The position numbers were made by a program, and so were the translations under genes. From NCBI RefSeq assembly GCF_947568905.1, contig NC_079167.1, forward strand, positions 49,848,001 through 49,912,000: 64,000 bases of DNA, given 5' to 3'. The stretch is from Ostrea edulis. Lineage: Eukaryota. Below the pieces are notes generated by a model, which was not told where the DNA came from, did not search any database, and saw only the letters and a list, made by a program, of their open reading frames with translations. The first letter of the stretch is position 1. Every line of letters begins with the position of its first letter. This document shows positions 35,770-37,951 of this stretch, piece by piece.

Positions 35770-37951
35770 CTACAGTTTCGTGGAGAGGTCATTATGCGTG
35801 TAACCATTTTTTATTTCTTTCTTTTCGGATAGACTGATATCCGACATATCCAAAGCCTTGTTGTCTATTCCATCGTGCTGCAGTTTCTGTTCCTGAGACT
35901 TCATGAACTTTGCAATAAAGTTCTCCTGAAAATTGGTTAAAACATTAAACTTCCTTGAAAATCATTCAGTGAATTGCACTAAGAGTTATACATTAAAAAC
36001 CCTTCTGATTACAGAGATTCCACTTTAGGGGAATTTCACTCCTCCATCCTTATATTTTCATTTTATTCAATGGAATAATTTCGTGGATTAAGTCATATTT
36101 TATTTATTCAATTCGTTGGCATTACAGAAACATTCAGAACACCGCCAACACATTCACTACATTTACTGCCATACTTACATCTCCATGTCTGACGCCACAT
36201 CTCATCTTACGACGGAAGGACTCGGGTAAAAATGGCATGAACACGTCAAAGAAAGGACAGATCACACGAGGATCCAACTCCGACATTTTTTTATGACCCC
36301 CTGAAATAAAATGATGCAATAATGTACAAATGATCCTGTATGAATAAACATTTCCTTCACAGACTTGTGATGTTTGACGTTTCTTTCCAAACATACTAAG
36401 AATACGACTAATCATGGCCCTGTTGTAATTCAGAAGAAATTTTTTAAAATATTTACAAATATATCTGCATGTAAAACTTAATGTATTTGATTCTCTATTT
36501 TGGCCCCATTCTACCCCTGGGGGTCGTGATTTGAATAAACTACTCTATGTCAGGAAGTTTTTATCTAAATTTCAACTTTTCTGGCCCAGTGGTTCTTGAA
36601 AAGAAGATTTTCCCAATATATCCGCATGTAAAACTTCGATCCCCTATTGTGGCTCCACTCTTCCCACGGAAGCTACAATGTGTTCTTTATGTCAGGAAGC
36701 TTTCATGTAAATTTCAACTTTTCTGGCCAGTAGTTCTTAAGAGGATTTTTAAATGACTCCATCCTACTTTTGTCTTTTCCTGATTATTTCCCCCTTCAAT
36801 TGAAGAAACTTGAGTCCTCTTCACCCAAGGATTATTTGTACCAAGTTTGATTGAAATTGGTCCAGTGGTTCTGGAGAAGATGACCATGTGAAACGTTTAC
36901 AACGACGACAGACAATGGACAAATTCTTATAAGAAAGGCTCACTTGAGCCTTCGGCTCAGGTGGGCTAAACATTGTATCAGGTTTTAGGTGGGCTAAACA
37001 TTGTATCAGGTTTTATGTGTGGGTATGCAGTTGTGGTGGTCGGACGGGTTTGATCGCCGGTGGCCAGATAGCTCAGTTCGTAAAGCACCTGACTAGAGAT
37101 TCAGGGGCTCGGGTTCGAATCCAGGTCTGGTCCGTTGCATTTTCATATTTCCCGTTACATTTGATGCCGTAGACCAGCCCCTGGAACTGACAGGTGAAAA
37201 TGTCTGTCAGGGGATAAAGATCCTGGTTTGATGTCTTCAAGGTATGAAGGCATTTAATGAGGGAGGAAAGTAGTAGTCAGACGGGTTCGATCGCCGGTGG
37301 CTCAGTTGGCCAGTAGAGCATCTGAATATAGATTCAGGGGCTCGGACACAAATCCTGGTCTAGTCCGTTGCATGTTCTCCCTTCCTGTTACACAGTCATT
37401 TTAAAGAACAGTATTTAAATGTAATTATCAAAAGACGCCGACAGACAGACGAAGGACGCCAAATAATGGCAATGGCTCACATGTAATGGAAGGACAGCTC
37501 CGCTCTAAAGACCAGGACAAAGAAAATACGTCCGCTGAATTTTCAGCGTAAATCCCAATCGTAACTCCTCGAATGTCTCGTTCACTCGATATTTATGTCG
37601 AGTGTGCGAGACATTCGAGGAATTCCGATTAGCGTAAATCCTAACAAGCGTCCTCTTTGATCTCGCAAAATCACATCTCGTTGATTTGAGATTATGAACT
37701 TGCGTAGATTAATTTCAATTTCATCCTAGTCTTGCGGTTCTTTAGACAATGCAATGTACCACAATGGGTCTAATGTCAATTCTATATCGATCATAGCTGG
37801 GGCAAGACGATACCTGTTTTTCCGCATCTAAAAAAGCAACCTCTCCGGTCGAGTTTCTAGTTACCCGGTGACAGTCATGGGATGTACAAAGCTGGTGACT
37901 GCCCCCTTTTTTGTCAAAAGGTTAGTTTAGTACAACAGGTATAACAAGGTG

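Follow-up and report, generated by a model that had tools for sequence, protein, structure and literature searches.

A decayed Helenus-type miniature retrotransposon with a tRNA-like unit in its long terminal repeats, and a Gypsy lineage as the likely helper of its family

What is the 361-bp stretch at positions 37032-37392 of a 64,000-nucleotide piece of DNA (hereafter the window; C4:49848001-49912000 of an 895-Mb genome with ten large contigs, C1-C10), and, if it is a mobile element, what moved it? The original prediction, made from the letters of the window alone, read it as a terminal-repeat retrotransposon in miniature (TRIM) that carries a tRNA-type RNA polymerase III (Pol III) unit in each long terminal repeat (LTR), by analogy with Cassandra of plants, and this structural reading proved correct. 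Our analysis indicates that the stretch is very probably one old, inactive TRIM of the Helenus type, which is non-coding and has LTRs built around a tRNA-Lys-like unit. The element belongs to an already published lineage, and its kind is not new; what is new here is a Gypsy lineage that shares cis-signals with it, together with two Helenus/Gypsy hybrid insertions.

The 361-bp element, its CAGT duplications, LTRs ending in TTACA, primer-binding site (PBS) as well as polypurine tract (PPT) had been predicted and are all present, as are the B box, the 8-nt anticodon loop and the TTTT run of the 5' LTR. Read from the sequence, the layout consists of an LTR of 128 bp, an internal region of 109 bp, and an LTR of 124 bp, with the following features:

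37028..37031, no strand: left target-site duplication CAGT, read directly, the same as 37393-37396
37032..37159, plus strand: 5' LTR, 128 bp, TG..CA ends, starting TGTGG and ending GTTACA (reading and repeat search)
37062..37133, plus strand: tRNA-like cloverleaf within the 5' LTR, tRNA-Lys-like, with an 8-nt anticodon loop (ARAGORN; Rfam RF00005)
37069..37080, plus strand: A box TAGCTCAGTTCG, family version TAGCTCAGTTGG (direct reading)
37112..37122, plus strand: B box GGTTCGAATCC (direct reading)
37140..37143, plus strand: TTTT run past the tRNA-like unit, candidate Pol III terminator and putative end of R (direct reading)
37160..37179, plus strand: TT spacer and primer-binding site TGATGCCGTAGACCAGCC of the tRNA-His type with one mutation (site alone, 37162-37179)
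37160..37268, plus strand: internal region, 109 bp, non-coding, two hairpins, 92% identity to family internal regions
37259..37268, plus strand: polypurine tract GAGGGAGGAA (direct reading); the same tract adjoins the 3' LTR in family copies
37269..37392, plus strand: 3' LTR, 124 bp, decayed, ending GTTACA (reading and repeat search)
37393..37396, no strand: right target-site duplication CAGT (direct reading)

This copy is an old fossil that is no longer able to replicate. Its two LTRs match in two halves at 80% and 88% identity by repeat search and at 73% overall in a gapped alignment; most two-LTR copies of the family have LTR pairs that are 92-98% alike, against 73-80% in the window copy. 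Compared with the LTRs of younger family copies, the 5' LTR shows 87-88% identity, and the 3' LTR is 76-82% identical to family LTRs. The cloverleaf had been expected to be better kept on the 5' side, and it is: the tRNA-like unit of the 5' LTR scores 35.6 bits with Rfam (gathering score 29, E 2e-5) and is also called by ARAGORN, whereas the 3' LTR is without an Rfam tRNA match at E<=1. In the 3' LTR, the first base is A for T (AG start), the D-arm region is scrambled, and the T-run reads TGTT. The primer site carries an additional G-to-A change relative to the family site. We regard the copy as inactive because of the low similarity of its LTRs (73-80%) and the mutations in its primer site and at the first base of its 3' LTR.

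Could such a layout be fortuitous? When the genome was searched with these 361 bp, 2,600 first-look candidates yielded 57 scored matches of full length and 85-87% identity; because the same arrangement recurs at this identity at dozens of scored places, it lies far beyond chance. At 24 independent loci (copies or arrays, the window included) we determined where LTR and internal region lie, and 23 of them are organized as LTR-internal-LTR or (LTR-internal)n-LTR with sharp TG..CA ends; the exception, L030, is cut off on its left side. Among the 22 complete copies other than that of the window, the 4-bp target duplications are perfect in 18 and match at 3 of 4 positions in the other four, and they vary by copy (CAAG, GATG, CATA, TATG, CATG, CATC, and CTAC, among others). 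Family copies measure 353-367 bp, with LTRs of 128-129 bp and internal regions of 108-109 bp, and the arrays have a 237-bp period, the longest seen comprising seven LTRs with 99% matches. The LTR-bounded arrays with their TG..CA ends and the copy-specific 4-bp duplications lead us to conclude that the family was inserted by an integrase in the fashion of LTR elements.

A tandem dimer of a tRNA-derived short interspersed element (SINE), without variable duplications, was the alternative against which the original prediction had been set, and a SINE-derived satellite belongs to the same class of explanation. Such an origin would fit the head-to-tail occurrence of the 237-bp unit, up to 6.6 copies, and the tRNA-like head that the repeated part holds, as SINEs do. 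We nevertheless reject it: the same 128-bp TG..CA segment stands at both ends of every mapped locus except the left-truncated L030, 22 copies combine varying 4-bp duplications with the LTR-PBS-PPT-LTR layout, the tRNA-like unit begins 30 nt inside the LTR and not at the 5' end of the repeat, there is no A-rich or simple-repeat tail, and solo units are numerous. The tRNA-derived SINEs (SINE2) resemble the family in their tRNA-like head with A and B boxes, but they are copied by the machinery of long interspersed elements, are tailed, and have no LTRs, primer site, or polypurine tract.

The number of solo units comes from a census with two 29-nt probes, one spanning the LTR/primer-site junction (<=3 mismatches) and the other in the 3' part of the LTR. 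The census found 862 junctions and 2,750 LTR-probe matches, and reversed control patterns gave 0. As no more than 1,724 LTRs can be explained by 862 internal units, the solo LTRs number roughly a thousand or more. The copy number, which the original prediction had left to be counted, can be put at about 860 for the internal region and about 2,750 for the LTR, with arrays of up to seven LTRs and many solo LTRs. The internal region of a young copy folds as two hairpins (z = -2.6), and the stem of the second is kept via different sequences in three oyster families, as judged by eye; these hairpins are candidates for a packaging signal.

How well is the tRNA-like unit kept in the family? The LTRs of the 20 younger copies scanned gave Rfam tRNA scores of 36-61 bits, and in an alignment of 62 LTRs nearly every column is >=90% conserved. 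The A box TAGCTCAGTTGG and the B box, on whose conservation the original prediction had laid weight, are each exact in 53 of the 62. The unit is most like tRNA-Lys, and its D-arm region finds its closest cellular match in a gene of the same window:

27207-27279: tRNA-Lys-CTT gene (ARAGORN)

ARAGORN reported the same 8-nt anticodon loop in nearly all copies, and because of this loop length a decoding tRNA is unlikely to come from the unit. The idea that the LTR units are working tRNA genes spread by the element would agree with their high tRNA scores and with the remark that tRNA-Thr could be encoded by a few Helenus families of bivalves (PMC10886601). We give it almost no credence, as no anticodon can be assigned to the 8-nt loop of nearly all copies, the Saccostrea and Crassostrea relatives have a loop of the same unusual length, and the window copy bears further mismatches.

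A second segment resembling a T arm with its B box, CCGGGTTCGATCGCCGGT, lies in the 30 nt upstream of the unit (L003:1513-1530, LTR nt 13-30; window 37044-37061). It agrees with the unit's own T arm at 17/19 positions, a level reached by 0/2,000 shuffles, and the segment can also be made out in the Helenus LTRs printed for Saccostrea and Crassostrea. Possibly the LTR descends from about 1.4 tRNA-like units. More tRNA-like matches were seen near Helenus copies, at L003:2687-2757 and L021:608-779; one of the two is a 35-bit unit unrelated to the family, and the other is an older partial Helenus in the opposite orientation.

Are tRNA-bearing LTRs new, as the original prediction had thought possible? 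They are not: such elements were published as Helenus in 2024, oysters included (PMC10886601). Helenus (TRIMp3) comprises TRIMs with tRNA-derived sequence in their LTRs (Kojima 2024, Biology 13:119; PMC10886601) and has been reported from 51 bivalve families, with a size range of 311-1263 bp, a box A of TRGCY..YGG and a box B of GGTTC, duplications of 4 bp in animals, tRNA-His as one of the primers in bivalves, and tandem arrays; the same study proposed that Helenus arose by insertion of a SINE2 into the LTR of a TRIM (PMC10886601). The element of the window has the short size, the tRNA sequence in its LTRs, boxes A and B, the PBS, the PPT, the 4-bp duplication, and homology to a named Helenus family. 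Short family motifs looked up in DataS1.fa of PMC10886601 matched Helenus-1_SaGl of Saccostrea glomerata and Helenus-2C_CGi of Crassostrea gigas. Counted by eye, the family LTR differs from that of Helenus-1_SaGl at 8/129 positions (about 94% identity), and the 73-nt tRNA-like part is identical by eye to that of Helenus-2C_CGi save for the first base, the odd anticodon loop included. Both published families share with ours the size class, LTRs of ~128 bp with TG..CA ends, a tRNA-Lys-like unit with A and B boxes and an 8-nt anticodon loop, the TT spacer, a tRNA-His-type site, and a GGGAGGAA-type PPT; 4-bp duplications, tandem arrays, and solo LTRs are likewise common to published Helenus and the family. 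Compared with the published consensuses, the internal region is clearly more diverged than the LTR, and the LTR flanks differ more than the tRNA-like part. The host appears to be an oyster species outside Kojima's list.

Three other kinds of element invite comparison. Cassandra of plants and Ajax of nemerteans are, like the family, miniature LTR elements with a small-RNA-gene promoter in the LTR, a T-run, and tandem arrays, but their promoter derives from 5S rRNA, as opposed to the tRNA type found here, and their duplications are of 5 bp and not 4 bp. An Rfam scan of window 36500-37900 at E<=1 found the tRNA and no match to 5S rRNA, which excludes identity with either. The bivalve element biv-TRIM (Satovic et al. 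2019) also has solo repeats and tandem arrays; it is without a recognizable primer site, has TGATCCCAAAGGAC as a conserved segment, and went undetected in Ostrea edulis (PMC6934838). The family has a clear tRNA-His primer site, and TGATCCCAAAGGAC was not seen on reading the internal region of the window element, so that biv-TRIM is excluded as well.

Which tRNA primes reverse transcription of the family? The tRNA-His-GTG genes of this genome end in ..GGTTCGAATCCTGGTCACGGCA or ..TCCTGGTCACGGCA. The family primer site, TGGTGCCGT[A]GACCAG, is complementary to the 3' terminus of tRNA-His plus CCA over 9 nt and then, past a 1-nt bulge, over another 6 nt. In some family copies, the LTR and TT spacer continue into perfect copies of tRNA-His plus CCA, 18-39 nt long; at L039 and L044 such a copy, of 18-20 nt, is followed by the normal internal region. 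Because the imperfect family site could not have templated perfect tRNA copies, tRNA-His must really have been used, and on these sequences we identify it as the Helenus primer. Matches to the LTR end joined to the perfect site number 96 at <=2 mismatches, about 35 of which represent a bulge-free subfamily variant.

In three further places, a single LTR and TT are followed by a perfect 18-20-nt tRNA-His copy and then by unrelated DNA (L035:1370-1519, L036:1370-1518, and L042:1378-1520; L036 is a minus-strand match, with coordinates on the reverse complement). L037 is a variant of this type, with part of a second Helenus copy ~28 nt further on, and at L035 the insert is flanked by an imperfect duplication of ~18-20 nt, not 4 bp. 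Plus-strand strong-stop synthesis on a tRNA primer normally halts at 18 nt, and the inserts at L035, L036, and L042 look like plus-strand strong-stop DNA that became inserted. At L032:1470-1540 (the same place as L040, C1:53195480-53195530), a Helenus LTR runs into a 39-nt perfect tRNA-His copy that reaches tRNA position 38; the fragment joins the inverted LTR end (..TATATACTACA) of a second Helenus family, such that two LTRs face each other across it.

Which autonomous element, then, could have supplied the enzymes? Animal Helenus had been tied to Gypsy solely by primer-site similarity (PMC10886601), and the sources consulted report no helper for Cassandra. The genome contains 77 perfect 17-nt tRNA-His primer sites, and by crossing this list with the matches to a reverse transcriptase (RT) fragment we located a Gypsy lineage represented by L063 (on C7) and L064 (on C2). 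Their LTRs are about 1.23 kb long, start with TGTAGTGGTT and end with CTTCCGGTTACA, and are 99.8% identical to each other over the comparable parts; a TAATT-type spacer and a perfect tRNA-His primer site follow, and the polypurine tract is AAGGGGGGAGGAA. A Gag-like frame spans 433 aa in L063 and 283 aa in L064, and the pol frames, of 1,221 and 1,304 aa, respectively, both encode RT, RNase H, and integrase in the Gypsy order; an aspartyl protease match is present only in L064. The Helenus counterparts are an LTR of the form TGTAGCGGTC .. CTTCCTGTTACA and a polypurine tract of AAGGAGGGAGGAA or AACGAGGGAGGAA. The two thus nearly coincide at the LTR tips (~10 nt at the start and ~12 nt at the end), in the polypurine tract, and in the primer site, and the rest of their LTR sequence is unrelated; the LTRs of the Gypsy lineage contain no tRNA-like unit. 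In comparison with the animal Helenus described before (PMC10886601), the agreement here extends to the LTR tips and the PPT of one Gypsy lineage and is accompanied by hybrids.

The first helper candidate had been a different family, with LTRs of 525 bp (TGTGGTAG..CCTGCTACA), a TTATT spacer, 113-nt tandem repeats past the primer site, and a perfect tRNA-His site, which fits the primer-site string given for Gypsy-39_CGi (PMC10886601). The inspected copies of it (L062:275-3774, L061:320-7651, and L047) are non-autonomous or broken: L062 is 3.5 kb long with an AACC duplication; L061 (7.3 kb) has no Pfam pol domain in any open piece; and L047 lacks an integrase piece but has pieces of RT and RNase H, 4.5 kb past the primer site. 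An RT is also carried by a second copy, on C1, 2.2 kb past the primer site, for which reason the RT probably belongs to this family. We do not favor it as the helper, as no hybrids between it and Helenus were found. Four other non-Helenus loci with a perfect site (L038, L041, L043, and L046) have no similarity to the Helenus internal region beyond the primer site.

A further link between Helenus and the L063/L064 lineage is provided by two composite insertions, each with its own 4-bp duplication:

C6:13039387-13049152 (L065:1388-8501 + L067:1-3153): hybrid 1, CGTG on both sides
C9:60970596-60972130 (L068:8597-10000 + L069:1-131), minus strand: hybrid 2, GATA on both sides

The C6 hybrid consists, in order, of a Helenus LTR, TT and a perfect primer site, Gypsy gag-pol, the Gypsy PPT and LTR, a Gypsy-type spacer, a Helenus internal region, and a Helenus LTR. 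Its gag-pol is 94.7% identical to that of L063 and is split by a 1.7-kb insertion in pol, its Gypsy LTR is 98.5% identical to that of L064, and its two Helenus LTRs are identical at 126/129 positions. In the C9 hybrid, a Gypsy LTR (~1.3 kb, 94.8% identical to that of L064) and then a Gypsy-type spacer precede the internal region and LTR of a Helenus, and no Gypsy coding sequence lies close by. At the junctions of both hybrids, the LTR donor contributed the spacer, and the internal-region donor contributed the 3' part of the primer site. When the genome was searched for further junctions between a Helenus LTR and a Gypsy internal region, C6 alone matched; the other four matches differ in the Gypsy part. 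The guess of Gypsy-type mobilization in the original prediction thereby gains support from the matching Gypsy lineage and the two hybrids. Given the matching tips, PPT, and primer site and two independent hybrids with their own 4-bp duplications, the L063/L064-type lineage is the likely helper of Helenus.

How did the hybrids arise? A normal replication cycle makes both LTRs alike, and an element with two different LTRs is therefore a first-generation product. We think it reasonably probable that the hybrids are fossils of plus-strand strong-stop DNA that jumped between Helenus and Gypsy templates in one particle. By the simplest route, the LTR of one element, together with its 18-nt tRNA copy, would anneal to the complement of the primer site on the minus strand of the other, which is possible only because both elements use tRNA-His and which requires joint reverse transcription. 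The origin of the spacer and primer-site parts at the junctions agrees with such a transfer. An integrase brought together a U3 tip of Gypsy and a U5 tip of Helenus, as the C9 insertion also shows.

Reverse transcription presupposes an RNA, and here the cloverleaf may have its role. In the cycle we propose, the A and B boxes would direct Pol III to start at the 5' LTR's tRNA-like unit; the polymerase would then read through the weak T4 of that LTR and stop at the T4 of the 3' LTR. The product would be an RNA of ~320 nt in which R corresponds to LTR nt ~31-113, U3 to nt 1-30, and U5 to the last ~16 nt; it would be packaged in particles of the Gypsy lineage, reverse transcribed from tRNA-His, and inserted by the Gypsy integrase. 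Pol III transcription of Helenus has been proposed before, explicitly without experimental proof (PMC10886601). Leakiness of the T4 is plausible, T4 being the shortest run that terminates Pol III. A run of T4 or longer occurs at LTR position 109-111 in 60 of the 62 aligned LTRs and at position 97 in one more (61/62), and T4 is missing from 35 of 36 internal regions.

Alternatively, the element could be a Helenus-type TRIM whose cloverleaf is not a promoter, with transcription by Pol II or by read-through and a cloverleaf with another role, for instance in the stability, processing, or packaging of the RNA. The cloverleaf retains all four of its stems (<=61 bits with Rfam), which is more than a promoter alone needs; a T4 in the 5' LTR is awkward for a genomic RNA made by Pol III; and contigs from runs labeled as RNA often pass from the element into unrelated flanks. 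We nonetheless consider this alternative unlikely, though far less so than a SINE dimer or working tRNA genes: the 30 nt of LTR upstream of the unit are too short for a usual Pol II promoter, the T4 is fixed in place in the LTRs and avoided in the internal regions at the frequencies given above, and Cassandra, the 5S analogue, is reported to have Pol III transcripts in work that PMC10886601 cites.

Several points weigh against the proposed cycle and its Gypsy helper. The T4 in the 5' LTR should also halt Pol III after about 80 nt, and read-through has to be assumed. Among the Logan contigs that fall on a young copy (L003:1451-1916), some stop at the borders of the element and, as solo LTRs, where the LTR ends, and many enter unrelated flanks; they come from four public runs as assembled contigs, which carry no information on RNA starts and ends and whose RNA status is mostly guessed. 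The hybrids seen are only two, and in principle they could have arisen at the DNA level: a Gypsy 1-LTR circle that recombined with a resident Helenus at the primer site could have produced the C6 composite, and this fits equally well. The C9 hybrid is harder to explain by recombination of a 1-LTR circle.

Two small features flank the Helenus copy in the window. Just upstream of the insertion, at 36959-37014, a 28-nt unit is in perfect tandem duplication. At 37557-37630 lies a 36-nt inverted repeat with a 2-nt spacer and 86% complementarity, which has the look of a small hairpin or of a miniature inverted-repeat transposable element and gives weak, below-threshold microRNA-precursor matches on both strands.

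Taken alone, the window element, a decayed copy of a retrotransposon kind already published, has little significance beyond annotation, where the family does matter: tRNA finders will report the roughly 2,750 LTRs of this genome as tRNA genes or pseudogenes unless these are masked. How TRIMs with a Pol III promoter are mobilized, and by which autonomous element, is a question common to Cassandra, Ajax, and Helenus, and a young Helenus family, a matching Gypsy lineage, and hybrids between them in one genome make a concrete, testable pair. If the hybrids did arise by strand transfer within one particle, they would, to our knowledge, assign an autonomous helper directly to a TRIM with a Pol III promoter for the first time, and they would show that one integrase can join a Gypsy U3 tip with a Helenus U5 tip.

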